Below the pieces are notes generated by a model, which was not told the origin of the DNA, did not search any database, and was given only the letters and a program-made list of their open reading frames with translations. Shown in pieces: positions 3,825 through 54,399 of a stretch of DNA of 64,000 bases. Within the stretch, counting starts at the first letter, position 1. Every line of letters starts with the position of its first letter. The DNA lies in contig VJWM01000253.1 of NCBI GenBank assembly GCA_010909165.1, positions 1 through 64,000 on the forward strand. Direction: 5' to 3'. The stretch is from Anthoceros angustus. Lineage: Eukaryota; Plantae; Anthocerotophyta. A program made the translations under genes and the position numbers.

Positions 3825-6800
3825 ATGGAGGGAGATGTCTCAAGAACAAGATGTGCACCGCCTCGAGTTCGCACTGAGGACCGACCTCCTCATGTTGATG
3901 CGAGAGTGGGCCCTTCCGACGAGGAAGATGGCCCTATACCGATGTACTCGGACAATGGATGGACGGGTCCGGCGGAAGATGCACGAAGGCGGATATCATC
4001 ATGGACTTTCCGCCGAACCTCCGGCAGCCTGCAAGCGACATACGCCGGGATGACCGACGAGGAGGGAGGGAGGGCGGATGCCGCCTCCATGCGTGAATTG
4101 GGCACCCCAAGTGTCATTGGTTTTGCCCCGCCGGACAAGCCGAAGAAGGCGCATGCCCCGACGTGCCTTCATGGGAAAGCGCACCCATGACATATGGAGA
4201 CGCGGTGAACCGGAGCAACCAAGGGTGGAGTGGGAACAAAGATGTGCCGGTCGGGAGGAAGGGGCAGTGGGCATGCACCGCCGAAAAAAGCGGTGCGGAT
4301 AGTTAGATGCACGCCATGTTATTGTGGTGGTGCCCGAGTTTCTCGGATGTTACAGGAGAAAGCACCTTCCGCAGATGTGATCAGCGTATGGGGAACCAGC
4401 GATACCATGGGGAGGAAGAAAGGCACAATGATGGGGGCCATCCGCCATCCAAGATATTCCTACACTTCATGTGTCGATCGATGAAGAAAGGTTGAGGCGT
4501 GCGTTGGATGACGATTATTTGACCGTTAGAGAAGCCGTGACATGGAAGAAAGTGGTTAAACCGCTCGTTAAGCCGGAATACTTGAGACCCTTCTTTCCGA
4601 CTCTGCATGCCCGGATCCGAAAAGTGGACGAGGCTTGGACGAACTACCAGCTGTGGTGATTTCAAAGGGAGAATCGAGGAAGGAGTCTTGCCTCTCTTTG
4701 CATGATTGATCCGGCTGAATGCAATGATATCAAGTCGCTGGATTGGCGAAGTTCGTAAAAATATGTGATGGGAGTGCTTGGAGGAAACCATACATATGCT
4801 ATGCACCTTGCGGACATATCACCGGGAAGGCAAGCCTCCAAAGGGATTGAGGCTCATGTGTATTGTGGTCGACTATTAGGAAATGAGAGTCTTAGCCCAC
4901 CACACACCATGTCCGACAAGAGGCGGAAGATGAATTTTATTGAGCGGTGAGGTATTTGAGAGACGAGCTGCAAATCGCGAAGAGGGATGGTGTCAACATG
5001 ACCATGAATCGAAATTCAACTTGTACAAGGTGCTTGACCGACGACGATTTAAGGGAATGAGGACAAGCAAAGATAAATGTAATAAGGTAGACAGGACCCA
5101 CATTCTATGCATCTCGTTGGAAGGCAAAGTGTGGGCGAATGTGGACAAGATATTCAACAAGTGGGAGTCCATGGAGTTGCCGAATAAAGCAAACATGCAT
5201 GTTGTACAAGCAAGAAGAGCAAGGGCAAACGTAAAGTCACATGACCAAGGGGGATGGCGCATTGTTGAAGCCTAAAGAGATGCAAGGCAAGCCTTGGAGG
5301 AGTTTTCAAGGCATCCCACAGGAAAGTGGGCAACAAATGTTGATAAGTGCAACAGAGAAGGTTTTGAGCTTCGGACCTCAATGGGATGGCGAAGGAAATC
5401 ACCGAGGAAGAAGTTTCATGTGATTCGGTGGCGATGGCCAAAGCACTTGGGGTGACTCATTCGACCAAGTCCGCAAGAATATCCTCAACACTCTGACGAG
5501 GTCATCGCAAGATTTCAAACGGCGTTTGAGGGAAAGGTAGGTGTCTTTATCCTCCATTCGTAGCGAGGGCGCGCATCGCGCCACTCTCGGTTGCTTTCCT
5601 TGAGGGGGCCGGGGGGGCGCCGCATGCGCCCGTCCATTCGGAGCAACGAGGGCGGCGGCGGGCGCGGCGCGCCCGTGCTCCTCGCGCCGTTCGAATGGGA
5701 GCGATGACGGGCGCGGCATGCGGCGCCCGGTCAACGATTCTCCAAGTCGTGATAGACTTGAGGACTCTAATGGCGCCGGCATGCCGCCCCATCCTCCCTC
5801 CCATTCGAGAAGGTCTAGAATGGCGCGGCATGCGGCGCCCTCATTGCCCTTCCAGTATATGCCTTTGTCCTGTGAATGTCCTTCCATTGAATCCGTTATA
5901 TTGACATAATCTTTTGTCGTTTACAGCAAGTAAAGGATGTGGATGACCTGAAGAAACTACCAGACACTTTTCAAGCTTTTGTGCTTGAAGTGCACACTTG
6001 GAAAGGCTTGGAGGATGAGCAGAGGGCTATGGCGGACATGGACATGGAAGAAGGCCTGCAATCTTTCACAGTTCCGACAACAGAGAATATTGTGAAGTAC
6101 CAGTTATGGCAAGGGATATCGTTGACATGAGGGGCTTCTTGATTCGGAAATACACATTGATGGTCATGGATGTGCCCGAGGATTTAACAAGGGAAAACAT
6201 GATGTCACTATGGGCCGTGATACGGTTTTCCATGCTTTCCATGATATGACAAGTTGCGATGAGATACGGATGATAGTCATGCACGGTGTGGAGGAGCACC
6301 ACGGTGAGGGAGGCAATGCGGAAGTGGTGCAGGGAGGGTTGGTGTCATTTGTATGGGACAAGACTAATATGCGAGCGACCTAGCTCGGAATACATTACGA
6401 TTGGGTGGGGCTTAACGCACACAGTTGGCCAAAATTTCCATGCTCCCCAATAATGTCCAGGTTCCTTCAACAACGGACGCGGTCATTGGGCATGACACGC
6501 CGTGAAGAAGGCTATACACATCCTCGATTGGTGGTGTGTTATCGAGGCCATTGGGCACGATGATGAGAATCATCAAAAACTTCTCAAGGAGGAGATTGGA
6601 TTTTAGACGCGTGCGAAGTGGATCGACAACGATGGTCGCTCTCCTATGCGGTCGGAATTGCATTCTGGATGTGGACAACGCTGCGCGAGTTCATACATCG
6701 GAGGATCCATGGATATGAAGTTTTGTCGGACGCCGATGAGGAGTTGACCCACGAGCCTCACCGCCGGGGTCCAACTCAGTTCTGGGCTAAAGAAGTGACA

Positions 6801-7040
6801 TTGTCGGAAAAAGGTTTGTCACAAGCTCAAGTTGTTTCTTTGGGGTCTTCCAGGAGGAAAGCGCCGACTGTAGAGATCCTTGACGTTGGGCAGCAAACAT
6901 TGGACACAGTGTGGCCTCCAACAGACAAGCCATCAGGTTGTGGAGGTGGCTCCTCGGACACAGGAAATATCATGGAGGAGAACGACAACTTTGAAGACCC
7001 AGATCATGCGTCTGAAGACCGTAGAAGTAGTCATGGATAG
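3825..7040 (+). pseudogene. ParB/Srx-like domain fused to a beta-class N4-cytosine/N6-adenine DNA methyltransferase-like domain; frameshifted in this assembly, one intron
   Basis: Joined reading frames give: YVMGVLGGNHTYAMH (~4755-4810) and KMNFIER; KYTLMVMDVP (6148-6177), then after a frameshift GFNKGKHD; FVWDKTN (~6347-6370); SEYITIGW (~6385-6410); RPLGTMMRIIKNFS (~6545-6586); GDWILDAC (6591-6614); SGSTTMVALLCGRNCI (6617-6664); acidic tail to TAG at 7040. Catalytic motif IV lying before SAM-binding motif I is the beta-class order. Confidence 0.72.
5537..5926 (+). other. Phase-0 spliceosomal intron in the ParB-MTase gene
   Basis: AAG|GTAGGT donor at 5537; TTGAC branch-like site at ~5901; pyrimidine tract CTTTTGTCGTTTACAG| ending at 5926. 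Splicing joins DEVIARFQTAFEGK in frame to QVKDVDDLKKLPDTF. Confidence 0.7.
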
Positions 7041-7356
7041 CGTGTAGGTGCCTGAGTCCGCCTTGTTTTGGCCGTCGTAGTAGGTAGTATGATTTCTTTG
7101 TTTCATGGGTTGAAAGTTTTATGTGTAACGATTTGCGAGCGGAGGCGGCAGGCATCACCTTCCTCAAAAGCCTTTTAACTTACGTCCAAAACGCCTATTT
7201 CAAGGCAACCACCATAACTAGAGGCGTTTCTCGAACTAATGCGTGAAATTGCATTGAGATGACATAACACCCATCCCTTAGAATCAAATCATGCTTAATC
7301 ATGCATTATAGGTATCAAGATTTGAACATGAGGGTTTCGATTTGCGGAAGAGGGTT

Positions 7357-17389: not shown

Positions 17390-20368
17390 TAATCGAGATG
17401 GATCATGTACACAGCCAGGGAGGTCGTGTAATCCTTCCTAACCTCTGAGCACGAGCACCTCTATAGGTGCTTGTTCAACTCTTAGTTCATCTAGGTGGAG
17501 GAATGTGCTCTGCATTAGCAGGTATCAACTGCCCTTGATGATCATGTCCATCTTCTTGGAAGATCACCCTTAGCACCTCCAGTTGGAGTAGGCTTCATGC
17601 ATCTTGTTCTCATTGAAGAACACGTCGTTGAAATCTGAACAACCTTTCTAGCCTCTGGATCCCACAAGCGGTATCCCATCTCACGGAATCCACCATAAAA
17701 ATACATTTCTTGGACTTGGGTGCCAACTTGTCGAAACTCTTTTGGAACATGGCGGTATGCCTCACAAACACTCGCAGATGCTTGTAGGATGGTTTCTTTC
17801 GGACCATAGCTCCTCTGGAACTGCTTTCGTCATGACCTTATTATGGGAATCATTAATAAGATGAAGCTGCGATGAACCGCTTCCACGCCCAAAACCCATT
17901 AGGCAATCGAGTTTGACAACAAACTCGCATCCTCTCAGAATGGTTACATTCATCCGCTCGGCCACACCATTTTGTGGAGGAGTATCTGGTGATCAATTCT
18001 CTTTTGATTCCCTTGGAATCACGGAATGTGAAGCTTTCGAAACATACTCTCCACCATTATACGTCACGAGACACTTCAATCGGTGTTGATTCTCTACAAG
18101 GGTGACAAATTTGAAACACCGTCGAACTTCATCCTTTTCCTCAAGGATAAACCCACACCTTGCGTGAAATCATCTATGAAAGTGACAAAAGTAGGAGGCA
18201 CCACCTAATGATGCGGTTGGCATAGGTCACATACATCCGTGAACCAACTCAAGGGTTTACTTCTACTTTTACCTCGTGTTCGATGTGATGATTTTGTCAT
18301 TTCCCATATAAGCGTGCTCACACATCGAGAGATCGGAGAAGTTAAACGAGGATATAACGAGCGAGATAAAACCTTCATTCCTTAAGGGCATATGTCCTAG
18401 CAAGCAATACCACAAAACATTTGGTTGCTCATCACTTGAATCCACGATCTTTGGCGTGTTTACGAAGTGAGTACAAAGTGCCACACTTGATCCACGAGCT
18501 AACATAAGAGAACCTTTGGAGATCTTCCAAGAGTGATCCCCAAAACCAGCGGTGGTAACCGCATCATCCAAGCATCTGCGCTAATCATGCTCTTTGTCAA
18601 CTTGAACATGCCTAACGTCCTTCACATGAATGAAGATCCGTTGTCAAACTTGAGTTGCACATCACCTCGCTGCGATCCATGCATAGTTATTTCCAAGCCT
18701 AACGCATCCTTTCCTTGTAGCATCATCGTGTTAAACCACTCTCTATGAGTAACATGGAAAGATGCACCGAGTCAATTATCCAATTGCGGAATAAATGACT
18801 ATCCACGTGGTAATGCGGCATTCAAGTAAGAAGAGATAAGGACATCTCCGTCCTCAGAGTTTAACTCTTCCAACTGAAGTCGCCTTCTTGTCGTCCTTCT
18901 TCTCTTTTCCTTGGTCCTTTTGAACTTCTCGCACTCTCTTTTAGTGACCCCTTTTGTGACAATAGTGACACTCCACATTCTTGTTACGACTACGAGATTT
19001 GCTACGAGAAAAGCTTATCCGGTTGCTTCCCCGCATGGGTGGACCTCCCTCTCACTATGAGGGCACCGGAACCTTTGGAAGGTTCCATGTTTTTCTCACC
19101 TCCTCGGTTAACGCTACCTTCTACATTTACAATGGTAAGACCACTAGCGAGTAATTACTCAGGCATGAAAGGTATCCCAACTCTCGTAATGTGACCAGCG
19201 AAACATAGCTCTCACGGAATAAGGAACGTGATACCTTGAGATGAGGCTGAAAATGGTATTGAAATCATTCGGATGATCGGACATCCTCGTCCCTTCCTTC
19301 ATCTTCAAGTCCACCGGTTGTTTCAACCAACACGAAGCCGCACTTTGCTTCTCATACAGTCACACCGCCACGTCGTAACTCGTGGTCTTATCTTTCACAT
19401 TGAAGTACCTTTGACAATGTTAGCATGATAGTAGATCTAGCAAGCTCATCCAGTCCGCCACTCATCACAGTCATACTATCGGTTTGGCTAACAACTTTAT
19501 GGGCTTGATCGCTTTTACGCACTAGAACATTATACACTTGTTCTTTCCGAGCGGGAAGTTAGTACCATCTAACTTCGATATTGTAGCGTTTTCTAATGAT
19601 GACATCATGACTCAAAAATCGTCTGACATAAAACATTCGACGCCTTGTCGGAAAAGTCAAAGAAAAGCGATCACGTCAGTGCATGTATTTTGCCGTTGTA
19701 TTCCACTGATAATATTTTAATTTTACGCTCCACCGTTTCGCAACTTCTGTCTTTGCCCGCGCCTGCCACCGCACGTCTGCCGACCACGCGCCCGCAGCCA
19801 CCCGGCGCCCTCGCTGGACCCGCAGCCGCCAGCGATCGGTCGCACCCCGCCGCGGCCGGCGCCCGCCTCTGCATGCGTGGCCCGGCGTCGCGCCTGCGGG
19901 GCGCGGCGCCCGTGCGTCTGCAGGCCCAGCGATGCGCCCGCGCTCCAGCGCCTTTACTGGCTGGCGCGCCCAGCGTCCGTGCTGGCGGCCTGCGCCCGGC
20001 GTCGCGCTTTCGCGCCCGTGCCTGCAGGCGCCGCGCGCCGCGCAGCGCGGCGCCCGCGGCACCTTACCGCGTTCGGCCCGGCAGCGCGGCGTCCGTCTTG
20101 CCCAGCGGCCAGCTGCGCCCGCCAGCGACCCGGCGCCGTCGCCGGCCTCCGCCCGTGCTGCCGCGGCCGCGCCCGGCGTCGCGCGGCCTCCGCGGCCAAG
20201 GCCTCGCGCGCGGCACTGACTGGCAGGGTGGCGGTGACCTTGCCTCGCTCGCGGCAAGCCGCTCACGGCTTCTTTGCGGATGGCGATCCTGCCCGATCTG
20301 GATCTGCAATTCCACGAGCTCACGCTGCTGCGGCTAGAAAATTCTAACATCACAACACAGCAAACCAT

Positions 20369-20381
20369 GGCTCTAATACCG
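20369..20381 (-). promoter_or_regulatory. Primer-binding site (tRNA-iMet-like) of copia-1
   Basis: Minus strand reads CGGTATTAGAGCC, adjacent to the LTR end ...TCCTTCAAC. Confidence 0.75.
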
Positions 20382-20697
20382 GTTGAAGGATGCGTGACAC
20401 ATGATGGTGGAAAGAGGAGAGGAGAGGAGGAGGCAAGTGTAGCTCTCTCACATTGAGATGAGGCTTGGAGGTATTTATACCCTCAATAGAACTCTAAGCT
20501 CCACAAGAAGCTCCTAGGAAGGAGCACAAGAAGCTTCCTAGTGATTAGCTTAGCTAAACTAATGATACTTATGACACCTAGCAGACTAAGTGTATTAGAC
20601 TAAGACAAAAAAAGCAAGTTGCCCATTACGCAGATTGCCAAAAGGCGGTTGATTCGGGCCCTTGTCGGGCTTCACGTTCTAGTCTTGGTGTTCAACT
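20382..20697 (-). repeat. Copia-1 5' LTR
   Basis: Termini GTTGAAGG...GTTCAAC (TGTTG..CAACA type) next to the PBS; TATAAATA on the minus strand at ~20472-20479. No partner LTR in the window. Confidence 0.65.
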
Positions 20698-21039: not shown

Positions 21040-21350
21040 AATCCGGCTCGTTGTAAATTCCCGCTCATTCGTTGTAAATCTCTCGTTGTAGAAAAAGACC
21101 ACTGTAATATTTTTATAGTAAATATTCGTAGTAAAATCAAGTAGTAAGCGTGGTTAATATATGTAGTAAAATTCTATAGTAATCTGTGATAAAATTCTAA
21201 AATAATAATCGTAGTAAAGTCTATAGTAATAATCGTAGTAAAATTCTAAAAGTAATAATACCTCGTAAAATTCTATAGTAATAAGACGTAGTAAAATTCT
21301 TTGGTAAAAAGCCCGTAGTAGAATTCTATGGTAAAAAGCTCGTTGTAAGC
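21040..21350 (+). repeat. AT-rich tandem array of degenerate GTAGTAAAATTCTA units
   Basis: Repeated CGTAGTAAAATTCT(A)TAGTAAT units at roughly 30-bp spacing; same core and orientation as 2830-3230. Confidence 0.75.
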
Positions 21351-22063: not shown

Positions 22064-23229
22064 TGTGGTAGGAGAATCAGGGGCACTCCCAGGTCCTCCC
22101 ACTATAGCGGCCACTTATCCCAGCCGTCGTTGGGTTTCGTCCCATGAGACTTGTGTGAAAGTTCGAGGCCTTGGTCGCAATGCTGCACACTCGGCCTTCT
22201 CAAGCAAGGCGCCCCTCTACTCTCCCTCTCACGGTGCACCACTTGCCTTGATCGCCAACCCTCGACCCCTGGCGACACAAAACAATTGCGGTCACCTCGT
22301 GAGGAGCCTACCACGGGCGCCCGGGGACCCCAGTTCACACCGATTTCGTCCCTACTTCTAAGACCAAACTTGACCTAGCGACACAACACAATTGCGGTCA
22401 CGCCTCGTGACAAGAGCCTACCACGGGCGAGACCCCAGTTCACACCGCGATTTCGTCCCTACTTCTAAGACCAAACTTCTCCACTCGGGGCGCTCTTTTA
22501 CTTGCATTTGGGATTCGTCCCTTAGGCTCTGCACTGGCCTTCCACTAACACCTACACCTCTAATCCTCTACTCATCTTCTCATCTCCTCATCCTCTTCCT
22601 CCTAGTCTAACCTCGATTCGGGCTTCTTGGTTTCGACTCGCCCTTACGGCTGCACAGGGTCGCCTCCACCGGCAAGTTCTTCCTTGGGCGGTTGCTATGA
22701 GTTTGACACAGACGGAGAACCTCGAGTCTTTCCTGTAGTCTACCCTCAAGCCGAGAGTTCTCGGGCATTTGCCACACACCCAAAGCAAAGCAATTTCACG
22801 GCAACCATTCACAAGGGAGCAACTCGTTTAGGCACTTGCGAGCAAGTCCTCCACCAACACTCACCACCGACTTCCTCTCTACCGGACTTGGCTCACGGAC
22901 ACGAAATTCCTCTGTAATGGCAAAGGACTCGATGGCGTGGGCGCAAGACATGATACTTTACTTTGTGAAATCCTCCTCCTCTTATAGGAGGCCTTCCACA
23001 TACAACCTCCCTTGGTGACCCTCTGCGGTCACCTTTTCCAATATTCTATTATTTCCTACACTTGACATTTAATGTCGGCACCTAAATCTATTATATCCTT
23101 GGTAAATTCTATTCTAGTAACTTCACCTAAGACCATCCTTGAAGGATGTCGATCTACCACCTATCCTTCCTTCCCCAAAGCTCATTTATGGTCATTGACC
23201 ATTCTTAGTCACCTTCTGGGGTGGTGACA
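22064..23229 (-). repeat. Gypsy A 3' LTR
   Basis: TGTGGTAGGAGAATC...GGGGTGGTGACA; matches 35732-36904. Internal 2x ~106-bp repeat (22275-22480). TATAAG on the minus strand at 22981-22986. Confidence 0.85.
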
Positions 23230-25849: not shown

Positions 25850-28680
25850 CATCAATCTCGTGGGCCACTCTCCATCTTCACACCTACCTTTGTAGGCGTC
25901 CCTTGAGGTGGTCAATTCCCCACCTTGACATGGAGGTTACATTCTCCTCCCTCACTTCCTTTTGGCTGGCCAATTTTGCACGAAGGGCATAATGCCCAAA
26001 ATCTTCTTCCTCACTACCCGACGTGCATGTACCACCTTCTTGTGGCGCTCCTCCGAGACCTCCTTTGTTCCAGTCGCTATTGAGCAAGCCCTTCTCCACT
26101 TGCCAAGCATCTTCTCCCTCGCTCAATTTTGTGCTTCCAGCAGCTCGCGCTTCTCTTCCAAAGCGGGCTCTTCTCCTCTTCCATATCCGGATCTTGATGG
26201 CTTGGTAGCCATCACTGCTCTTGGCGTCCATTCTTTGGACGCTACCTTCTCCCGAGCCTCTGTTTTTCCTCTCTTGCTCTAATTGGGCAAAATGCTCCTC
26301 CTCTGGACCTCCTTTGTTCCAAGTCCTCTATTCTTGAGCAAGCCCTTCTCCACTTGCCAAGCATCTCTCGCGCTCTCTGGTCTTGGCTTTTAGCTCGCGC
26401 TTCTCTTCAAGCTCTTCTCCTTCTCTCCTCTTCATGTCCGGATCTTGATGGCTTGGGTAGCCATCACACTCTTGCGTCCATTCTTTGGACCGCTACCTTC
26501 TCCCTAGAGAGCCTCTGTTTTGCCCTTCTCTTGCTCTAATTGGGCAAAATGCTCCTCATATACTGCCTCCATGAGAATCCGTTGGGTTGTTGCTCGAATG
26601 GCTCTTTCTTGACTGCGACAACCTTCCCTCAGACCTTCTCCGTGTCATCCATGAGGTCGCTGGAGCTTCTCCTGACCTTTCCAATTTGGCTGCCTTTTCA
26701 TCGGACTCCATGGCCTCCAATTGCCATTTGGTCCTGCCTTCCTCCGGCCATGTCTTGAGATTTCACTTCCTCTTGGCATGCCCACAAGGAGGCTGGTCTC
26801 TAGCCCCTTCAAATCCACGGTGAGTGCTTCACAAGCACCCGGCAATTCTCCTAGGGGTCCTAATTCCACCTTCTCTTCTTCTTGAAATTTCCAGCTCTCA
26901 CGCCTCTCGGGCCATCGCGCGGTGGCCTTGGCCTTCACCGTCGCTCCATCCGCTCTCCCACAGCGCGGAGATGGTGGCCTTGGCCTTCCTCCGGCCATGT
27001 CTTGAGCTTCTCCTTCCCCTTCCACCGCCGTAGGCTGTTTTGCACGGCGTGGGGTGCCTACAGCGGTGGTGCTCCCCCCCGTGATGCGCCTACCTACCAT
27101 GGTGGTGGCCTACCATGGTGCCCACCCCTTGGTGTGCCTCCCTGGGTAGTCAGCCGGGTGCCTCTCTCGTAGGCACAAAGGAGATGGTGGGGACTCCCCA
27201 CTCTCGCATCACCCCTCCTGGTCCTTCTCTCATAGACCACCATTCGGCCTTCTTCGGCGCCGCTCTTCTTCCTTGCTTGCTCACAGCGGGAAAGGATTCC
27301 CACTCGGCAACTTTGTTGCCTCGAACCTTCTCCTCTTGCTTCTAGCATGCTTGTGGAGTCGACCTCCCACCGTCTTCGCAATGCAAAGGCAAAGGCCTTT
27401 CCAACCTCTGGAGATGGATGACCTCAAAGGGATGCCATGCATCTTCAAGCTCCTTGCTTGTGAGAAGTCCCTCGGTTTCCCATAAATGCACCAAATAGGT
27501 GCTAAGATAGCAGGCCTTGGCCTTCCTCATCCACGAATTTGGCTTGAGGAGCTTCTCTCGATGGTGTATGCTTCATACATGATAGTCCCCAATCCGGCTT
27601 GGCTCCCATGGAAATCTTCCACAAAAATTGGAGGAAGTTGGTCTTTGAAATAAGAGTGCGTTGGTAATTTACCAACCCCGGCACAATCTTTGCGAAGAGC
27701 CTCCACTTGACTCCTTGATGCTCTCGGTCTTCCGGCCATTCTTGGCGTGGGCCTTCACTCCTCCATCCATCATGTCAAGGAACTCTCTGCGGGATGTCGG
27801 AGGCTGTCCTCTTCCCCCATTCGACCTTTCGAGGAGAGCAATTCCAGTGCTCTCTTCCTCCGGTCTCCCGTACACCTGACGAATACTCCTCACGGTCCAG
27901 CGGGATCCGTTCTAGCATTCCTTTCCGGTAGCGCGGCGAGGGCTGCTTCCGATTGATGGAGGTTGATGTAACACTCCTCAATCAATTCCAAATTGGTGTA
28001 GGCCCATTGGCGGCCATACACCCATCCTAATTGGATGTTCTCCTCCTTCTGAAAATCAACCAAATCTGGGGTTGCTGCCAAAGCAAGTGAATTGGGCATC
28101 ACAAGTTCACCTCCCCACAGCGGTGGCCCTGCTGCTTCTTTCTTTCCTTCTCCTCGCGAGGAGAGCCCTTGCCTTTTCCTTTCGAGGCATGGCACCTTCC
28201 TTCTCCTCGCTCTAGCAAATTACTTCCCAATTTTCAGCGTTGTGCTCCAAGCTTCACCAAAACCTCCTTTTCTCACTCCCGACACACACAAGCACGTTAG
28301 CCTGCTTGAGCCTCGGCTGTGCCAATTCCTCCCTTGATTTCTTCTCAGCGCCCGCGGCAGGTAGTGTGATTTTCCTCCTTCTACTCTCATTTCCTTCACC
28401 TTCTTGCTTGAGCTCCAACCCGCGCTCTCTCCGGTGCGGCTCCTTCAATGTCTCTTCCCGGTCGCTTCGGTGCCACGGCTTGGCCTCCTCTTTCTCCTTT
28501 CCGCTGTTCTCTTCGCCTTCTCGTTATGGGTGGCGGCGGCGGCAGCGCTCTTCTCCCCCTTCTTTTGCGCTCGGCGGTCTCGGTCTCTTGGGAGTGAGTT
28601 CGCCTTAGCTCGAAAGTTGGCCCCAAGCGCACTTTGCCCTTTGGATGGCGCCACGGCGCACAACCCTAGATTGGTTCATC
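25850..28680 (-). pseudogene. Gypsy A extra ORF downstream of pol (unknown function, coiled-coil C-terminus)
   Basis: GWVYGRQWAYTNLELIEECY, DWGTIMYEAY, KACYLSTYLVHLWETEGLLT. Contains a 2x ~250-bp repeat (26057-26558). Confidence 0.6.
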
Positions 28681-38869: not shown

Positions 38870-41010
38870 CGAATTAACGAGGTTGCGATATTTGTTCTTC
38901 AAGTCTTCCAAGTCTGCGGGCCACTCGCCCGTCCCACTTCTCTTGCAAAGCCTCCCTTTCCACAGTAACTTGTATGGACATAGCATGATACTTCTCCTCC
39001 GCATCGTGGGAGCGCCTCAACATCCTCTTTTGCAAGGTATGATAGAACCTTCTCTTACGCACAACCAATAGCGGCGTACCATGTCCTCGGCTTTCTTGCG
39101 ACTCTCTTCCTCTTGCGAGGCCCTACGATTAGCTTCTCTCAGCCCCCTTGGCTTCTTCTAACTCCGGAGGAGTCCCATGACTCTTAGGGTCTCCTTCTCC
39201 TTCTCAATTCTCCTACCTCGAGGTCCTTGCTATTTAATAACTCATCCTTAGTCTCCATGAGCTCTGGGCCTCCTTTACATCCTTCTTGGCCATCGCCATG
39301 GCACAATTGTTGGACTTGTTCTCTCATCCCTCTCTTCTCCAAGACCCATCCTTCCTTCTCCTTAGCGTGTCACCATAATGCCATCCAACTCTTGCACCAT
39401 CTCTTGATGCCTCAACTCCCTCAAGCTCCCATGTAAGTCGCCTTTCTCTTTCCATAAGCCTACCTACACTTGACTCTAGCTCTAAAATCCTAGTTTGAGC
39501 TGCCCTTAATTCTTGTCCACGTTCCCTCTTGAGGCAACACCCCTAAAATTTCCTAGTTCTCCTTCCTTTATGAGGTAGCCCCATAGGAGGTAGCTACATG
39601 GGCAAGCCTCCTCTCATCCAAGTTCCTTGCTATCCCACATCGCCACACCTCTTAAAGTGTCCAGTCGCCACGGATGTTTGAGACATCCATGGGTCGTTCA
39701 ATTCAAAACCATGTCACCCCTAGCTCCATTCTCGCTCATTGCGCCTCCTTCTGGGCCCCTCCATACCTATCCATAGGCCTATCCATTTGACTGCCACTCC
39801 ACTAGGAGCCCTACGCCTATAGGTAGGGACACTTGCACCCCTCACTGCCTCGGGTGCCACACGCCTGGGGACTCGACCTCGCTCACTTCCCTCGGTGGGG
39901 GTGCCTCCCTACGTCATCCCGATCTGCCCTGTAGGGGCAGCGGTGGGCCTCCACAGCCCCATGGGTTATTACCCTTCCTACTTGCCCAAGTTCCGGTTGG
40001 TTTCTCCTTCTCTTCCTCCATACCGGCTCTTCTTGCGGCTTCCTCCGCAATGGAAGCCGCCTTGACTCTCTCCACGAGCTTCTTCGCTCTCCACCGCCGT
40101 GAGTGGATCCAACTCACCGCTTCCTACCACCTTCTTCCCGATGCTCTCATTGAATGAACTTCTTCTCCTCCTTCACTGCGTGGGACAAGTAGGCTCCTCC
40201 ATTGCTTTCCTCTTCTTCCCGTCTCTTGTTGGGGAACTTCTCTCACGGGCTTAGGGACTCCGCATCCAATGATACCACTTGAAGTCCATCTTGGAAAATT
40301 CCAATTCACAGCTTCAATAATCCTTGGAGCTCATAAATAGAATCGTAGGTGGAGGTATGTATTTCTCGTGCTCTTGGATTCCTCGCATTGGGTATAAGCA
40401 ACCTTCAGCGGTGTGCGGTATAAACATCATACATTACCATTCCCCAATGCGGTAGCCCCCTAGACAACCTCGGATGAAATATAGCTGCGCATCACTAAGA
40501 TATGTCTTCCGTTGCGCACTCACCAATCAAGGAGAATCTTAGCAAATGTTCTCCATTTCTCCTTGAGTTCTTGATTGCACCAACCACCTTTCTCCCTAGA
40601 CTTATGCCCGCGTTGTAACATGTCCATAGCTTTCTCAAGTAGCTCATGACACTTCCGATTCTCCTTTTCTCTTCCCCTTCTCCTCAACCTTCCTTTCAAG
40701 CTCCATAATCGCAATCCCTCGAGCCTCCTCATTTGGTCTTCCATATACATCGGATGTGTTGTCCACAGATCGATCCTTGCATCCCTATGTCCTCGTTCCT
40801 GCGTGGCATAGTGAAGTTTATGAAGCACTCCTCTATCATCTCCAAGTTGACATAGGCCCGATGGCGGTAACACCCATTGCACGTTGGGTTCTCTCCCAAA
40901 GCTGCAGAATGCTACCAAGTGCCTAGCCTCCACATGCGGAAGCAATTAAATGCACCTCTTCTCCCCCTAGCAACCAATTTGCCCTTCTTAGGTGCGGGCG
41001 CTTTCACCAT
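38870..41010 (-). pseudogene. Gypsy B1 extra ORF downstream of pol
   Basis: Starts MVKAPAPKKGKL (ATG 41010); RHRAYVNLEMIEEC; HWGMVMYDVY; C-terminal coiled-coil (ELRAAQTRILELES). The end coordinate is approximate. Confidence 0.6.
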
Positions 41011-42299
41011 CTTGCACCTTCAAAATAACTACACACAATACAAGCTTGGGCACGCACGTGCTCGTTTCCACCTAGTTGTCACCTCGGTGCCTACACACAA
41101 TTGTGAGATTTCTTCACTCGCCACACAAGATCCACCAAGAGCAACCTTCCACTTACTTCCTCTTCACTCCACGGTCCCCTAGCTCAAACTTGGTGTCCTC
41201 ACAACATACACCTCCTTCGCCCAAATCCCTCACTTGCAAGGTTCTGGCACACACAAAAATCAGCGCCCTTGCTCTCTTCACGGTCGTGCTTCAAATCCTT
41301 CACACACAACCCCTTGCACGCACCTCCTTCTCCTTGCACACACACGGCACGCGTTCCCACCAAGTCCTTGCTCTAGCTTTCCTGCATGCCCAAGCTCTTC
41401 CTCGATTCCTCACGGACTTCCTAGGTGCTCCCCTCACACCCCAGCATGGCCCTTTGGTTGTGACAAAAACTCTTGATATAGGCCGTTGATTCCTGTGGCA
41501 CTATTTCCATCCTCGATTTAGTAGCCCTACTTGTTATAAACACCACCCTTACATATTTATGGATTATTATTCCTAATATACCCTATTTATCCTCAACCTT
41601 GCATATCACCCTTTTAACAACTTCCTACCTACACGCCAACAACTTCCTTGACTTGCTTGCAAGTATCCAAGTATGTCGCCCCCACCTGCACGTAGGGACC
41701 TCACCACCCTCGGTGGGACACTCTCATGACACTCTCATCCACCTACCTAACCTATCCCTACATGTAGTGTCACCTACTGTGGTCACCTTCACCCTACACT
41801 TCACCCCTCCCCCTACCTTGCTCATCCCCTACATGTCACCTATCCTGTAGGGTCACTACCACCATACTCCTATGTCTCCTACCCCATATACCCGTGGGGA
41901 CCCATGACCTATCTATGTAGGGTCACCTTTGTCACTCGCCCTCTGTAGGGTCACCTTTGTCACCCTACGCCTACATTCACCTTTGTCACCCTCGCCTACT
42001 CTATCAAGGGTTGCACACCCTCCCGCCAACTATCACCTACATCTACCCCTTGTAGGATGCACCTCCCCCAGTGGGGTGCCATGCCCCTCGTCCACCACCA
42101 CCCCTACACCTCCTTGGCGTAGGGTGCACCACTCAAACCCTCTCCCAATTAGCATGTGCCAAATATAACAAGCTGAAACACCCCACACAAAGGTGCCCCA
42201 TCCGACGATCCACCCCTAGGACGCTTAACTCTCTTACATTCCATTGTCCAACACACCCAATTGGCTTGTGCATAACACTCATCAAGAATAAAATGAACT

Positions 42300-45200
42300 T
42301 ATCCCTCGGTGAACTTCTCACGCCTCCACAACATCTCGTACCAACCCTGCTATCCATTTCTCCTCGCGGTCACGGCCTCCCTTCACACTTCATTGCATTG
42401 CTGCAAATTCCATGTGATGCACACCCCGTCTGATCTCTTCTTGCACTCACTTGAGTCAGGCTTCCACCAAGAAATACCCGGCAATTCCTTTGGCACTTTT
42501 GAGTTCGTCTTGATCCAAGTTTTGTCAACTCCAAAAAAATGAATGGCCCAAAGTTTTGCATTTCACATGCTCCCCTCCCACTTGTTTGCGTCCTGCAAAC
42601 AACTCTCTGATTGCAAGTACTTCTTCACTTCCATCCATTCACCACAGTAGGAGTGGCTCCCCAGCTCCTTCAATTGTCTTGAGCCATTTTATACAGCCAT
42701 GACCTCAAGGTCCCATCCACCTCAACCTAAGCTTCCGAAATCCATATATCGGCTATCATAGAAGAACCAAATCCCGGACACAATAGCACTTTGTCTCGTA
42801 ACTTCCCATCATGTCTATCCTTCCTAAGCTCCACGGATCGTTGGGTCTCCTCAAAGCATCCTCCCTATCTTCCTCATGCCCAATGAAAGACTCCAATCTA
42901 GCTAGTGACTATCTCTCTGAGACATCGCTCATCCTCCATGATCCTATAGGTAGGTACCTCAAATTCAACAGCATCACGGAGACATCCCATATGTTAAATA
43001 ATAGGGTCTTCTTGGTGGTCACCTTCTCTGCATCCTGTAAGCCCATAGCGGGTAGCTTAGTGTCCCAATCGTACATGTGAGTCACGGTTACCTTGGTCAA
43101 GATTGTACACAACGCCCATTCGTTTTCTCCGTCAAACCATTCGCTTTGGGATTGTAAGGAGTTGTCTTTCGATGCCGAATGTTGAAGTAGGTGGTGAGAG
43201 TCTCGATCACCGAGTTGAGGAAATGAGTTCCCCTATCACTGACCAACTCCAAAGGACATCCATACCTCGTTATAATGTTCTCAAAGAGAAACTTACTCTG
43301 CGGTCGTCGTCCTTCCTTGTTGCTTGACCTCCACCATCTTTGTACAATAGTCAGTAGCCAGATATATTGCTTCCTTGTCCATTGTGTGGGTGGCTTGATT
43401 GGACCTACAAAATCTATACCCACTTCTCAAATGGTGCCAAAGGTAGTATAAGGTGAGAGGCCCTTTGTGTTGACAAAGTGGGCCTTCAACCCTCGACACG
43501 CATCACACCTCCTAATAAATTCCCACATCCCTCGCATTGTAGCCCACAGGCCTGCATCCAAGACCTTCTTCACGGTGATTTGCGTCGAATAATGACCACC
43601 ACCTCTTACGCATGTAAAGCTTCAGACCAAAGCGACTTCTCTAATTTCCGGACATCGATCTTCTCGTCGGACCAAGCTTGTACAAGACCCCATCTGTAGG
43701 CAATAAGGGGCTGTCTTGTGGAAAAAACGCCCCTCCCTAGACAAACCATCGGGCATGATTCCATGCTCTAGAAAATTTTACCTCACCATTTTGAGATACC
43801 TTGGGCATGAACGCCCCTCACGTTCTAATCTCCTCCTTCCATGCATACCACGTCGCCTCCCTAGCTCGCCCACCAGCAGGCGTTGTTCCATCCACAAATC
43901 CAGTTTCTCCCGCTTTGTCCATCTGCAAGTTTTTGAGCTGCGGCCGTTTGCATGCTCCTCCTCCAACAACGTTCGGATTTCTTCCATTCCTGCTGGTCTA
44001 GCCTCATATCCAGGTCCAGCTCGTGCTCCCATGGCGACCTCCTCGCCTTGCACCTCCATGGCCACCTCATGGTGATTTCCCATGAATCATTTTCTTCTCT
44101 GCCGTTTTGCTCAAGCTTCTTGGGATGCATCTCCTTCCTCGCCCTCTGGCGCACCTACCTCCCTAGGGCCTTCTCCTCCTGCGGCCCCATGGCGCACAGC
44201 TTACCTCCAAGTGTGGCGCCTTTTCACAGCGCTCCATGCTCCATTTTTTGCTTCTTTTGCCAACGTGTGGCCTCCACTTGCAGCCCTCCGACTGCTCACC
44301 CTTGAGAATTCCAGCCTCCTCCTCGCGCCCATGGCGCCCTTTTATCCTCTCGGTTCCAGTTGTCTGCTGCGGCCTTTCACACTGGGCTCCCTTCTTGCTC
44401 ATTTGACCTCTCTGCTGGCAAGGCTTGCTGATCAATGCTTAGGCCGTCTACAACATGCTCACGTCCTCCCCTTGACCCGGCCGTGGCAACTCCTCGTCGG
44501 AAAATCGGTCATCTGGCTTCAAGTCGCTCTCCGGTTTTCGGACGAAATGAAATCAACATTATCGCTTCCACAACCTAGTTTCTACATCATAATCAAACTC
44601 TTGCAGCGGTAGTACCCACAGCAATCCTTCACGACATAAAACTTGTTCACAAGGTACTTCAGCAAAATGATCAACATGAAGCGTCACTTTGCAAGCGCGG
44701 TAGTGTCTAAACTTCTTACAGTATATGATGCCAAGACCTTCCCTCTCGTGGTTGAATAGTTCTCTCGGCATCCGTAAGTTGCGCATAGAAAATCGGATGA
44801 TCCGTTTCTTCTCGTCCTTACGGCTTAAGATGGTCCCAATGGCGTGGCGGACACATCCGTATACATGGAATGGTTTTCCCAATCGGTGGTTGTAGCGTTG
44901 GTGCGCTCACCAAGCTATCCTTTAGCTTCGAAAACTTCACTTGCCTGTCCATTCAAAGGCATGTCCTTCTTGGTCAATTGTCAACAAGGCCGCCTTCTTG
45001 GCAAAATCCTTGATGAATCTTCCTGTAACCTACCAAACCTACAAAGCACTGCCTCACCGTTTGGGCGCGTCCATCTCGCTATCACCTTCTCCTATCTACA
45101 CCGCCCTCACTTTGAAACTCGATGTGCTAGTAAGATTCCTTACCATCATGCCAAAATAACACTTCCTGGATGAAGTTTCATGTTGGACTCCACTGCGCCC

Positions 45201-46650
45201 GAAACATTGTCTCAGGTGCTCGGCAATTTCCTTCTTCAAACACGCAAAAATCATCTAGGAAGACCTCCATGAACTTCCTCAAAAATCTCGAATATGGCAT
45301 TCACTACCATGAAAAGTGGCGGGGGCATTGCACAACCGAAGGCAACTTAGAATAAGCATAGGTACCCCAATCCGTTGTGAGCGTGGTCTTGTCTGGTCCT
45401 CCTTCCTCAGAGATTTGGTTGTAACCGAATAACCATCAAGCTATACATCTCATGACACCTTGTCCTGTCCATGAAAGGCAAGGGATGGTGGTCCTTCTTT
45501 GTGGCCATTAAGCTTCACGAAATCTTACACACCGCACTTTCCCTTGCTTCTTTGGTACAATCACGATGGGTGCCACCACTCGCTTGTTAATACCGGATAA
45601 ATCACCGCCTCCAAGTATTGGTCTAGCGATCCTTGACCACCATAGAATACTTGGGATTCGGCTATCTTGCTTGATCCTTCGAGTCTTGCCCTCCTTCAAG
45701 TCTATTCGATGTATCCCCATTCTTGAGAATTCTGTCATGTCGGTAATCTTGAAAGCAAATATGTCTACATATTCCTAAGCAACCTACAAAACTCCTTCTT
45801 CTCCACTCTACCTAGAAATCTTGACCACCTTGCTGGGTTCTAGCTCTAAGTCTACCTGCGATCGGATCTACGTACCCTCGGACTACTACCTCTTCACGAT
45901 CCTTCATCGGAAAATCTCGATCATATGCTCTCCCTTTCCAAAACTACTCCTTCTCTATGTGCCTCCACCTTAGATCATCTTCTCGGAGCTTCTACTTGTA
46001 GGCGAGTACACCAACTTGGGTTTTATTTCCACCACGAGGTCCACGAAGCGGTCACTACCGAAGAGCTTACCCCGTACCTACAGTATATCCATCGGACGAG
46101 TTGGTTTTCCCCCTTCATAGGGTGCCTTGCTCCATGACACAAAGCTACCTCGGTGGCCCTACTCTACATGACTTAAAGGTGATACGACCAAAATCAAAAC
46201 ACCTATTCCATACAACCAAGGCTTCCTATCAAGACCTTGTAGCCTAGATCGACCGGTCTCATGACAATGTAGGTAAGATGGTGAGACCTCAATCACGGTT
46301 GGCACATTTCTCAACACCCCAAAGGTTTCCTCCTTGTTGGTCCGCCATCCTCAAGAATACCGAATCGGTTGAACTTGGTGAAATGGCGTCTCCTCTGTCA
46401 TCAAGTTGACTCGATCCGAATCTAATGGCACATTGGGCACCAAGCACCACGCAATTTCAATTTCAATCTCCCCCGGATCAACAAGTTCAACCACGTTTAC
46501 CTCCGGATCCATCGGCCTCCTTCGGCTCCACAGGTTGGGATTCCCCTATCGCCTCCTTCACAATTTTGCGGGATCTTGGACTCACATAAGCGCCTCAAAG
46601 TGACCACAAATTCTCGGTCAAGCAATGCATCGTGGCGGAGATCTTATCGA
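42300..46650 (-). pseudogene. pol: Gypsy B1 pol, frameshifted
   Basis: MGIDFVGPIKPPTQWT, FLFENIITRYGCPLELVSDRGTHFLNSVIETLTTYFNIRHRKTTPYNPKANGLTEKTNG (integrase); RVVAPIVIVPKKQGKVR (RT); GKPFHVY..AIGTILS (RNase H). Confidence 0.92.
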
Positions 46651-46699
46651 CAAAGGTTTCCTCCCGTTTGCAGCCCGATGCTGGTCGGCTCCGACCTTA

Positions 46700-48550
46700 T
46701 TTTAAACTCCACCCATGGCCCTCCTATGGGACTCCATGGCCGGATTCACAACGGGTTCCAACCTCTACCTCCATCTTTGCATGTTGGTGAGCCTTCTTAG
46801 CTCGTCCTCCAACATTGCTGCTACTTCCCTACTAATGTCGGGACACCTTTCCTCCCCTCCTCCACCGTAGGTCGCCCTCCCGGCGACACCTACCACGATG
46901 GTTCCCTCATGGACCTCCTCATTTTCCTCCTCCTGCCAAATTCCGGCTTCCGAGTCTCCCAGGCCAAGGTGAGTCCTCCTCACCTTCCTTCTTCGTTCCT
47001 CTCGCTCACGGCGCACGGCTTTTCGGTCTTCTCCGTCGCTCGGATCTGGTGGTGACCTTGGCCGCAACAACCCTTCTTCCTCACTCATTTCTCCTCATAT
47101 CCTTCTTCCACAATCCCAGTACATTGTCTCCATCGGAAGATCAGTCGCTTCCACCTTCAAAGCGGCGTTGAAGTCACGTGATAGCGGTTTGAGTTGGAAG
47201 GTGCTCCTGTAGGCTCTGTGAACCTCACTCTGGGCGTGTCGGCTACTCGTGGCTGAACACCTCGGATCTCGCCTTGTGTCCCAATTCTTTGCACACTTGA
47301 CAAGGTACATACCCCATTTGTCTCTTTGGTTACAGGCAATCATTGGAATAGTGACCGGTGCTCCAATTGTAACAACATCCGGTGGAATCGCCATTGGTTT
47401 GAGATGGTTACGGTCTCCATGGACTGGCGAGGTAGGCGAGACCCATACCTCATGATTGGCGGTCTGCGGGTTGGTAGGTCGCCCTCATCGGCGGGCGACC
47501 TCCGATTGCTGCACAGTAAGCCTCATCCACATACCAATAATCACCGGGCATGGCCCGGCTCCATGATTCCGCATGGCGTGGGGCTCGATACATTCCGGTT
47601 GGTGTGCCCAGTTGGTGACAAATTGAGCAATACACCAAGCTGTCTTGCGGGGAGGCGATCTCGTGTGGCTTGATTCTTCCAGCCTTGACTCTCCGTTAAT
47701 CTTGTCAAGGCTTCCGACCGCAATTCCTCCTCTCCTGTGGGCGTTTCTCCCTTCTCCATCCGCCGCCGTTTTCCCTTTTCTTTCCTTCTCCGGCGCGCAG
47801 CCTCCTCTTGCCTCTTCTTAACCTTCTCTAGATCTTCCTCATCCGTCGTTCGTAGGCTTTCTCGGATTCTTCATCGGATGGCGAGTTTTTGGGTACCACT
47901 CTCCTCACTCTCGGAAGATGAAGATGAAGATGAAGGGGAGGAAGAAGAAGAAGACAAACTAGATCTCTGGACCCCTTCCTCTTCTTATGACTCCTTCTCT
48001 TTTCCTCCTCCTTCTCTCCCGACTCCTCTTCATCGGATTGCTCCAAAGTTTTAGTCCCTCGTCGACAATGTACCTCCATTTTCCTTGATAGGCGCTCACA
48101 AACCAATCCACGCTTGCTCTGCGAGTAACCCGATGTGGGAGGATTGCGAGTCACAGTGCACACTTGGGACTCGATCCAAATATCCATAGAACCTTCAACG
48201 TAATCAAACAATGACTCCCGTTTCTTCCTGCGAAGGTTCTCAACTTTGCCAAGGTGTGGTGGGCATGAGCCCTCGGCGATTGAGCGGTCTTCAAAGAATC
48301 CCAATCTGGGCGCACTTGCCCGTGTTGTTGTACCTGGGCATGCCCCTCGGCAGCCGGGAAAATTCGCAATCGATCGCCACGGTGTCCTCCAGTTAGCATG
48401 AGACACATGCTCAAAGTGCGCAAATGCCTCCGGCGTCGCCCTTCTTCTTCTCCCCAAACTTGACATATTGTTGCATTGTGAGGTTGAGGCAAACCTCCTC
48501 CCCTCCTGCGGTTCCACTCATGTTACTTGACATGTGCACAGCGAATTCAA
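46700..48550 (-). pseudogene. gag: Gypsy B1 gag with two CCHC knuckles
   Basis: KKRESLFDYVEG, GLSRKM, VYCSICHQLG(H)TNR, CYNC(G)APGHYSNDC. Confidence 0.75.
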
Positions 48551-50929: not shown

Positions 50930-53092
50930 GTTCTTCAAGTCTTCCAAGTCTGCGGGCCCACTCCCCACTTCTCTTGCAAAGCCTCCCTTTCCACCAAACA
51001 CTTGTATGGACATAGCATGATACTTCTCCTCCGCATCGTGGACGCCTCAACATCCTCTTTTGCAAGGTATGATCGGCTCTGAACCTTCTCTTACGCACAA
51101 CCAAGCGGCGTACCATGTCCTCGGCTTTCTTGCGACTCTCTTCCTCTTGCGAGGCCCTCGATTAGCTTCTCTCCACAGCCCCTTCTTCTAACTCCGCTTG
51201 GAGAGTCCCATGACTCTTGTAGGGTCTCCTTCTCCCTTCTCAATTCTCCTACCTCGAGGTCCTTGCCATTTAATAACTCATCCTTAGTCTCATGAGGCTC
51301 GGACCTCCTTTACATCCTTCTTGGCCATCGCCATGGCACACACCAATTGTTGGACTTGTTCTCTCTCATCCCTCTCTTCTCCAAGACCCATCCTTCCTTC
51401 TCCTTAGCGCGTGTCACCATAATGCCATCCAACTCTTGCACCATCTCTTGATGCCTCAGCAGCTCCCTCAAGCTCCCATGTAAGTCGCCTTTCTCTTTCG
51501 AGCCTACCTACACTTGACTCTAGCTCTAAAATCCTAGTTTGAGCTGCCCTTAATTCTTGTATCCACGTTCCCTCTTGAGGCCCCAACACCCTAAAGGTAC
51601 CTAGTTCTACTCCTTCCCTGATTTATGAGGTAGCCCACTTAGGAGGTAGCTACAACATGGGCAAGCCTCCTCTCATCCAAGTTCCTTGCTATCCTCCCAC
51701 ACCTCTCCCAAAGTGTCCAAGTCGCCACGGATGTTTGAGACATCCATGGGTCGTTCAATTCAAAACCATGTCACCCCTAGCTCCATTCTGGCTCATGTGA
51801 GCGCCTCCTTCCTGGGCCCCTCCATGCCTATCCATAGGCCTATCCATCCTGCCACTCCACTAGGAGCAGCCCCTCGCTATAGGTAGGGACACTTGCACCC
51901 CCTCACTACCTCGGGTGCCACACCGTCGTGGGGACTCGACCCTCGCTCACTCCCTGTGGGTGCCTCACCCCCTCAGTCATCGATCTGCCCCTACCGTAGA
52001 CAGCGGTGGGCCTCCCCTCGGCCCATGGGTTATGCTAGCCCTTCCTACTTGCCCAAGTTCCGCCGTGGCTGGTTTCTCCTTCTCTTCCTCCCATACCGCT
52101 CTTCTTGCGGCTTCCTCGCAATGGAAGCCGCCTTGACTCTCTCCGAGGCTTCTTCGCTCTCCGCCGTGAGAGTGGATCCAACTCACCCTCCTACCACCTT
52201 CTTCCCGATGCTCTCATTTGAATGAACTTCTTCTCCTCCTTCACTGCGTGGGACAGTAGTAGGCTCCTCCATTGCTTTCCTCTTCTTCCCGTCTCTTGTT
52301 GGGGACTTCTCTCACGGGCTTAGGGACTCCTGCATCCAATGATACCACTTGGAATCCATCTTGGAAAATTCCAATTCACGCTTCAATAATCCTTGGAGCT
52401 CATAAATATGAATCGGTGGGTGGAGGTATGTATTTCTCGTGCTCTTGGATTCCTCGCATTGGGTATAAGCAACCTTCCGCGTGCGTATAAACATCATACA
52501 TTACCATTCCCCAATGCGGGTAGCCCCTAGACAACCTCCGGATGAAATATAGCTGCGCATCACTAAGATATGTCTTCCGTTGCACTCACCAATCAAGGAG
52601 AATCTTAGCAAATGTTCTCCATTTCTCTTCCTTGAGTTCTTGATTACCAACCACCTTTCTCCCTAGACTTATGCAGCGTTGTAACATGTCCATAGCTTTC
52701 TCAAGTAGCTCATGACACTTCCGATTCTCCTTTTCTCTTCCCCTTCTCCTCAACCTTCCTTTCAAGCTCCATAATGCAATCCCTCACAGGCCTCCTCATT
52801 TGGTCTTCCATATACCTTCGGATGTGTTGTCGGCCCACAGATCGATCCTTGCATCCCTATTTTCCAGTCCTCAGTTCTGCCGTGGCATAGTAAGTTTAAA
52901 CACTCCTCTATCATCTCCAAGTTGACATAGGCCCGATGGCGGCCATACACCCATTGCAATTGCGTTGGGTTCTCCAAAATGCTACCAAGTGCCTAGCCTC
53001 CACATGCGAGAAGCAATTAAATTCGGGCATCATGCCTCTTCTCTGGCTCCTAGCAGCAATTTGCCCTTCTTAGGTGCGGGCGCTTTCACCAT
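50930..53092 (-). pseudogene. Gypsy B2 extra ORF downstream of pol
   Basis: MVKAPAPKKGKL start at 53092; QWVYGRHRAYVNLEMIEECL; PHWGMVMYDVYTHAEGCLYPMRGIQEHEKYIPPPT. Confidence 0.6.
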
Positions 53093-54399
53093 CTTGCACC
53101 TTCAAAATAACTACATAGACAATACAAGCTTGGGCGCACGTGCTCGTTTCCACCTAGTTGCCACCTCGGTGCCTACACACAATTGTGAGATTTCTTCACT
53201 CGCCACAAGATCCACCAAGTGAGCAACTTCCCCTTCTCCACTTACTTCCTCTTCACTCCACGGTCCCACCTAGCTCAAACTTGGTGTCCTCACAACATAC
53301 ACCTCCTTACGCCCTCCCTCACAGGTTGGACACACAAAAATCAGCGCCCTTGCTCTCTTCACGATCGTGCTTCAAATCCCTTCACACACCCTTATGCACA
53401 CCTCCTTCTCCTTGCACACACCGCGTTCCACCAAGTCCTTGCTCTAGCTTTCCGTGCATGCCCAAGCTCTTTCGCGATTCCTCACGGACTTCCTAGGTGC
53501 TCCCTACACCCGCTTGCATGGCCCTTTGGTTGTGAGAAAACTCTTGATATAGGGTTGATTCCTTGCCGGTGGCACTATTTTCCACCGTCCTCGATTTAGT
53601 AGCCCTACTTATAAACACCCTACACCACTTACATATTTATGGATTATTATTCCTAATATACCCTATTTATCCTCAACCTTGCATATCTGACCCTTTTAAC
53701 AACTTCCTACCTTGCATATACGCTTTTTAACAACTTCTAGGTTGAAACACTTGCCTATCTGGCTTGCTTCCCAAGTATCCAAGTAGGGTGTCGCCCCCGC
53801 CTGCTTGCCCGTGGGAGACCTCACCACTCTCGGTGAGACACTCTCGACACTCTCATCCTACCTACCTATCCAACTTCACGTGTGAGGGTGTCACCCCGTC
53901 TACTATGTAGGGTCACCTTGGTCACCCTACTGCTTCACCTCCCTTCATACTACTTGCATCTCTCCCTACTTATGGACGCCCTACCTATCCTATGTAGGGT
54001 CACCCGTACTACCCTGCATACTACCCCACAAGGTGTCGTCCTACCCACGCCCATGTGGGGACCGCCCTATCTGTAGGGTCACCTTTGTCACCCTACACTA
54101 AGGTCATCACCCTCGCCTCTAGGGTCACGCCCACCCCTACATCACCACCCTTCGCCACTATCACCTACATCTACCCTTGGGATGCACCTCCCCCCTACGG
54201 TAGTGCCATGCCTTCACCACCACCCCTACACCTCCTTGGCGTAGGGTGCACCCTCAAACCCTCTCCCTACCCAAATATAACAATGAAACACCCCACACAA
54301 AGGTGCCCCATCCGTGTGATCCACCCCTAGGACGCTTAACTCTAGTTCTTACATTCCATTGTCCAACACACCCAATTGGCTTGTGCATAACACTCATCA

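Follow-up and report, generated by a model that had tools for sequence, protein, structure and literature searches.

The plus strand at ~6.03-6.72 kb of a 64,000-nucleotide stretch of the plant Anthoceros angustus (Anthocerotophyta; contig VJWM01000253.1, positions 1 to 64,000, hereafter the window) probably encodes, judging from sequence comparison, a beta-class amino-methyltransferase domain of the PF01555 (N6_N4_Mtase) type, dependent on S-adenosylmethionine (SAM) and lying in a plant nuclear gene. A first-pass annotation, made from the letters of the sequence, had described 3825-7040 as an intron-containing gene in which a ParB-like domain is joined to a beta-class DNA methyltransferase, the latter with a full set of motifs recoverable by stepping across frameshifts. 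The reading of this interval is broken among all three plus-strand frames, and every peptide string quoted in that annotation was found on the plus strand, at its stated place or no more than a few bases away (Table 1).

A methyltransferase domain read across frames

The reference methyltransferases were E. coli YhdJ, six phage enzymes and 80 viral loci. Among the phage enzymes is the methylase of Wolbachia phage WO, which by Pfam consists of ParB_N and N6_N4_Mtase; a protein search with YhdJ returned close orthologues only and was of little use for profile building. Two hidden Markov models (HMMs) were built, one from 44 ParB-methyltransferase fusions and one from 80 methyltransferase domains, and the DNA was searched with a local profile-to-DNA dynamic programme in which frame changes and stops are permitted at a penalty.

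Using the methyltransferase HMM and a penalty of 6, the top match in the 64 kb, on both strands, is at 6548-6667 and scores 30.9 bits, compared with a maximum of 19.4 bits in the 124 other 1-kb bins (Gumbel p = 6e-7 per kb). The alignment places PLGTMMRIIKNFS, GDWILD and SGSTTMVALLCGRNCIL onto motif X, strand 1 and motif I, respectively. When the penalty is lowered to 3.5 the path spans DNA 6103-6672 and profile columns 53-241, which is nearly the whole domain, and the score rises to 39.4 bits, where the null reaches at most 20.1 (p = 2e-8). Matching p-values, about 5e-7 to 5e-8, were obtained with 150 dinucleotide shuffles, and a reversed-profile decoy reached 13-16 bits. When 6542-6694 is read through as 52 residues joined by X, PF01555 is the sole family found by Pfam (E = 3.1e-5, 24.5 bits, covering positions 166-208 of the 221 in the profile). 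A longer X-joined composite, built from the coordinates, scores 44.9 bits against the 80-sequence HMM (hmmsearch), from FVWDK to RRIHGY. With phmmer, 82 of the ~90 reference methyltransferases were matched, the best single-sequence scores being ~20-28 bits, and among PDB sequences M.MboIIA came top and M.RsrI lower, both at the equivalent position and both with E > 0.1.

Significant matches, in colinear order, were obtained for the W.K and hE..il blocks, the motif X helix, strand 1, motif I and the strand after it. Close to the C-terminal end of the domain the motif X helix runs straight into strand 1 and the motif I loop, and the W.K and hE..il blocks lie upstream of motifs X and I. Because the dynamic programme, the shuffles, the decoy, hmmsearch and Pfam agree, we take the predicted methyltransferase domain to be real, the call holding for its C-terminal half, where the PF01555-type match is significant. 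The beta-class assignment of the first-pass annotation is supported at ~6.03-6.72 kb by the dynamic programme, Pfam and hmmsearch. Its claim of a full motif set in order stands from FVWDK through motif I and beyond, but not for motif IV, where the candidate is non-canonical and non-significant.

The motif IV candidate lies at distances from an upstream GD dipeptide and from W.K that fit beta-class enzymes. At the candidate itself the DNA reads GAT GTG CCC GA GGA TTT, that is D-V-P, two orphan bases and G-F, and no canonical (D/N/S)PP(Y/F/W) was found in any frame of 5927-6350. A hydrophobic residue at the second position of motif IV occurs in active amino-methyltransferases, for example in the NIPY/NLPY motifs of the Erm and KsgA families. 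The candidate is plausible and unproven as a sequence reading, and the indel noise described below leaves the true sequence of motif IV uncertain. If functional, the enzyme would bind SAM via motif I and motif X and would be expected to methylate an exocyclic amino group in DNA, either N6 of adenine or N4 of cytosine.

Several results weigh against a methyltransferase at this locus. The Pfam score of the 52-residue read-through is below the whole-domain gathering score of 26.7. As assembled, motif IV is D-V-P-?-G, with the first proline absent and the aromatic position unreadable; an N-terminal composite that includes the motif IV string scores -2 bits, and the N-terminal half of the domain reaches p-values of 0.002-0.02 in the dynamic programme, depending on the penalty. 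Searches with individual pieces were also negative: ten stop-free pieces had no match in Pfam or PHROGs, three had none among PDB sequences (phmmer), one had none in phage genomes (tblastn), and an 85-aa piece (6126-6380) had no true homologue, and no plant protein, among 1.84 billion representatives. Two ankyrin-repeat proteins matched by the 85-aa piece are spurious, since their score is the sum of 9-10 weak repeat matches. A 113-aa piece found no match in a word search of 5.8 billion proteins, tblastn with seven individual methyltransferases missed the locus in the window, scans of JGI metagenomes and IMG/VR contained no close relatives, and five open reading frames (ORFs) of the window were absent from the protein collection by exact look-up.

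We attribute the failure of all piecewise searches to indel-type frame changes. The clearest case is at 6587-6616, where GGDWILDAC is flanked by frame changes of +1 and +2 nt, 3 nt in total. Frame 1 is thus open through the segment and reads RRRLDFRRVR where strand 1 is conserved, which is why no search with the 70-aa frame-1 piece succeeded.

Frame changes, assembly noise and decay

About eight frame changes per 570 nt fall in the methyltransferase domain, several at short runs of G or C, including a 1-nt change in the GGG run at 6113-6115. The number of in-frame stops required along the path is zero. The retrotransposons of the window lend strong support to the suggestion of the first-pass annotation that such frameshifts could come from assembly errors. 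An integrase profile from liverwort gypsy elements matches copies at 42.7-43.8 kb and at 54.8-55.9 kb on the minus strand, with 355 and 373 bits, and these two copies contain 18 and 21 frame changes, respectively, and no in-frame stop. An older integrase copy at 29.1-30.0 kb contains 27 frame changes and 2 stops. When the 7-kb gypsy copies at 40001-46835 and 52073-59000 (minus strand) are compared, there are 303 mismatches and 299 gap openings. Natural divergence produces roughly one indel per 10 substitutions. The ratio of mismatches to gaps is near 1:1, unlike natural divergence, and thus points to assembly as the source of about one indel per 50 nt. This level of noise in the window (~2%) is most simply that of an unpolished long-read assembly. 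A point on the other side is that five frameshift contexts are common to both gypsy copies, where systematic errors are possible, as are inherited or real changes.

Because the frameshift density of the methyltransferase domain equals that of the window as a whole, the frameshifts are uninformative on pseudogenisation. The frame changes in the domain are most simply assembly errors rather than decay. The locus is either a genuine eukaryotic PF01555-type methyltransferase gene or a young relic, and cannot be called dead. With indel noise of ~2%, any call of a pseudogene or a frameshift on this window is unsafe before polishing.

An alternative is that the locus is dead, a once-functional, horizontally acquired methyltransferase gene that has decayed, in which the degenerate motif IV is real and so are some of the frame changes. 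Such a history would account for a motif IV that departs from (D/N/S)PP(Y/F/W), for the loss of detectable similarity in the N-terminal half, for a stop at 4756-4758 in the frame-0 path followed upstream by the first-pass annotation and for a position among degraded retrotransposons. It is harder to reconcile with a frameshift density no higher than the background (8 per 570 nt compared with ~1 per 50 nt), with a methyltransferase path free of in-frame stops and with a coding-strand composition kept over 3 kb, and a hydrophobic second position in motif IV is, as noted above, known in active enzymes. Based on this balance, we regard a dead relic as unlikely.

Gene model and the N-terminal region

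The putative intron has the donor AAG|GTAGGT at 5537 and the acceptor TTTACAG|CAA at 5926/5927, preceded by a pyrimidine-rich tract, and the sequence on either side is in frame 1. The plus strand has G in excess of C and A in excess of T from ~3750 to ~5550-5750 (GC skew +0.09 to +0.23) and again at 6000-7100. This purine bias collapses across 5537-5926, where the GC skew is ~0 or negative, and reverses past ~7100-7250. The coding strands of the retrotransposons at 22-64 kb have the same purine-rich bias. A skew block that is broken at the intron, with the bias seen in transposable element (TE) coding strands, supports a two-exon unit on the plus strand. The phase-0 GT-AG intron of the first-pass annotation is thus as it was described, is plausible, and coincides with the break in coding-strand composition. 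We infer a unit of two exons, at ~3.8-5.54 and 5.93-7.04 kb, roughly within the limits given by the first-pass annotation, of which the methyltransferase would be the C-terminal part; a stand-alone methyltransferase starting from Met 6029 is a possible alternative. Downstream of the domain, frame 2 is stop-free for 157 codons (6567-7037).

The interior of the putative intron (5560-5860) is ~60-70% GC and contains two inverted-repeat pairs, 5606-5627/5828-5849 and 5691-5711/5788-5808, as well as a minus-strand ORF of 162 codons with no family match. This interior could be a small inserted element.

Table 1 Features of the locus and repeats elsewhere in the window
Feature	Position	Strand	Basis or remark
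Putative exon 1, purine-rich (G>C, A>T), ~570 codons	3825-5536	+	Strand composition
VLGGNHT	4774-4794	+	
Putative GT-AG intron, phase 0	5537-5926	+	Splice signals, skew
Exon 2 start, 63-codon open frame-1 stretch ending ...YQLWQG	5927-6115	+	Possible alternative Met 6029
Candidate N-terminal strand and motif IV: GDIVDMRG...YTLMVMDVP, 2 nt, GFNKGKHD	6115-6203	+	DNA reading, spacing
LMVMDVP	6157-6177	+	Frame 0
GFNKGKHD	6180-6203	+	Frame 2
Central conserved blocks FVWDK, SEYITIGWG, NAHSWPK	6204-6434	+	Colinear with methyltransferase HMM columns 140-175; also dynamic programme at frameshift penalty 3.5
FVWDK (W.K motif)	6348-6362	+	
SEYITIGWG (hE..il..w block)	6385-6411	+	
Short variable, target-recognition-like linker, ends ...YTHP	6435-6541	+	Low-scoring or insert stretch between W.K block and motif X
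Motif X helix SRPLGTMMRIIKNFS, strand 1, SAM-binding motif I loop SGSTT..., GRNCILDVDN, LREFIHRRIHGY	6542-6716	+	Dynamic programme, Pfam, PDB
SRPLGTMMRIIKNFS (motif X helix)	6542-6586	+	
GGDWILDAC (strand 1)	6588-6614	+	
SGSTT...DVDN (motif I onward)	6617-6679	+	
C-terminal tail, frame 2, stop at 7038-7040	6717-7040	+	No recognisable domain (Pfam, PHROGs)
Tandem repeat, 26-nt unit, 7 copies	21155-21348		
Two-copy repeat, 107 nt	22268-22478		
Two-copy repeat, 251 nt	26048-26557		Inside gypsy-rich region
Two-copy repeat, 227 nt	60129-60595		Inside gypsy-rich region

No domain was assigned to the long first exon: its pieces had no match in Pfam or PHROGs, and a 71-residue X-joined composite around VLGGNHT found nothing in Pfam. 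Matches of ~19 bits to the 'aGf.l...vW.K' part of the methyltransferase profile occur inside putative exon 1, at 4486-4644 and 5312-5407 on the plus strand. They are at the top of the null and have no colinear extension, and we rejected them as methyltransferase pieces; they are probably an effect of chance or composition.

It had been proposed that the first exon carries a ParB/sulfiredoxin-like domain. This would make the protein a ParB-methyltransferase fusion, either derived from a phage or prophage or akin to the accessory genes of giant algal DNA transposons, with the ParB part directing the enzyme to specific DNA. Fusions of ParB_N and PF01555 are common in phages (PMC12704722), proteins of ~1100 aa with ParB and an N4/N6 methyltransferase occur in transposons of brown, green and red algae (PMC12477816), and the ~570-codon N-terminal exon of the gene model leaves room for such a domain. 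The domain itself did not appear. The ParB_N profile from the 44 phage fusions, run by dynamic programme over 3-7 kb, gave p-values of 0.2-0.8 at every penalty, in line with the absence of any ParB signal in Pfam and PHROGs. The string GGNHTYA at 4777-4797 contains no arginine, so the ParB-box arginines (GxRR.RA or GHHR type) are missing. Neither a transposase domain nor terminal inverted repeats were found in 1-10.9 kb, where indel noise would mask weak matches and only 3.8 kb lie upstream, and the methyltransferase half is equally close to fused and to stand-alone phage enzymes. We therefore consider a ParB fusion rather improbable, and the ParB part of the first-pass annotation is unsupported.

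When the locus is compared with the algal transposon proteins (Ectocarpus Sola1-1_Ec32, 1104 aa, and those of green and red algal elements) and with the phage fusions, all are large, with a C-terminal N4/N6 methyltransferase, the locus having ~940 codons. It differs from them in its lack of a detectable ParB domain, in the lack of a transposase or terminal repeats nearby and in its land-plant host.

Related enzymes and the surroundings of the locus

To our knowledge, few multicellular eukaryotes have amino-methyltransferases of prokaryotic type, and two such enzymes have been characterised, N4CMT of bdelloid rotifers and DN4MT1 of Marchantia, both of which make N4-methylcytosine (4mC); we know of no other case in which 4mC is a functional mark in eukaryotic DNA. 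The locus, with its different catalytic motif and long N-terminal region, would be a further test case for the domestication of foreign DNA-modifying enzymes.

The PF01555 beta-class enzymes M.MboIIA, M.RsrI, CcrM, E. coli YhdJ and the phage WO methylase share with the locus a compact domain of ~200 residues and the order W.K, hE..il, motif X helix, then strand 1, the motif I loop and GR..I..E/D. In contrast to these enzymes, the locus as assembled has D-V-P-?-G as motif IV, yielded no close relative in the searches, and belongs to a eukaryotic gene with a probable upstream intron and long extra regions. Like the locus, bdelloid N4CMT is a horizontally acquired PF01555-type amino-methyltransferase in a eukaryotic genome. 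N4CMT has a C-terminal chromodomain and its writing of 4mC has been shown experimentally (PMC8885841, PMC10406627), whereas no chromodomain or other reader domain was found in the Pfam scan of the pieces of the locus.

The closest known case is that of Marchantia polymorpha DN4MT1a/b, which, like the locus, are beta-class amino-methyltransferases of presumed horizontal origin in a plant genome. The locus might thus be an orthologue or paralogue of this sperm-specific N4-cytosine methyltransferase of bacterial origin, given that DN4MT1 is of the same class and also horizontally acquired (bioRxiv 10.1101/2021.02.12.428880) and that the TE proteins of the window are closest to those of Marchantia and Riccia. 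However, DN4MT1a/b are N4C enzymes with TSPPY (bioRxiv 10.1101/2021.02.12.428880), compared with MDVP at the locus, and DN4MT1 is described without extra N- or C-terminal domains (PMC8885841), compared with a unit that probably has a long first exon. These differences are with the published descriptions of DN4MT1. The 85-aa N-terminal piece, as reported above, matched no plant protein among the 1.84 billion representatives. A DN4MT1 relationship seems distinctly improbable to us.

A more specific form of the preferred PF01555 reading is that the gene is intact, with two exons, and represents a second independent acquisition of an amino-methyltransferase in land plants, distinct from DN4MT1, in which the PF01555 domain is combined with a ~570-residue N-terminal targeting region. 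We put this forward tentatively, as a scenario that is in itself unlikely. If it is true, the N-terminal region might bind DNA as a divergent relative of ParB, like the ParB part of the algal transposon accessory proteins, and specific loci of an embryophyte could receive N6-methyladenine or 4mC from the enzyme.

That strings resembling motifs came together by chance from three frames, or that the DNA is bacterial or phage contamination, would fit the uniformly negative piecewise searches and the failure of tblastn with seven single methyltransferases to find the locus, but is scarcely credible, given that the dynamic programme with equal freedom reached at most 21 bits in the 124 other bins and the 150 shuffles compared with 31-39 at the locus, that Pfam gives E = 3.1e-5, and that the locus is on one continuous sequence with plant retrotransposons, has the same indel noise and composition as they do and is interrupted by what looks like an intron.

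The plant setting assumed by the first-pass annotation is supported by the TE protein matches, which are of a liverwort-like kind. The integrase ORF at 55168-55905 (246 aa) has its best matches in Marchantia polymorpha and Riccia species, with at most 62-75% identity over parts. A degraded Ty1/copia element occupies 10.9-15 kb on the plus strand and includes a gag with a UBN2-like motif, an integrase and the start of a reverse transcriptase, in ORFs of 150-230 aa. No viral hallmark was found adjoining the locus and no second copy of the methyltransferase locus within the window. Pfam assigned no family to flanking or minus-strand ORFs; matches to MCM_lid (E = 0.013) and gag_pre-integrs (E = 0.029) are at the level of noise and were discarded.

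Over 42 kb (22000-64000) the plus strand is pyrimidine-rich, with a GC skew of -0.2 to -0.38 and an AT skew as low as -0.3, which would fit Ty3/gypsy elements, nested or in tandem, that code on the minus strand. A GC-rich block at 19600-20500 has several frames, on both strands, that lack stops over 230-270 codons, with translations rich in Ala, Arg, Pro and Gly; the block is probably low-complexity sequence and no gene. The 251- and 227-nt repeats (Table 1) may be duplications internal to long terminal repeats.

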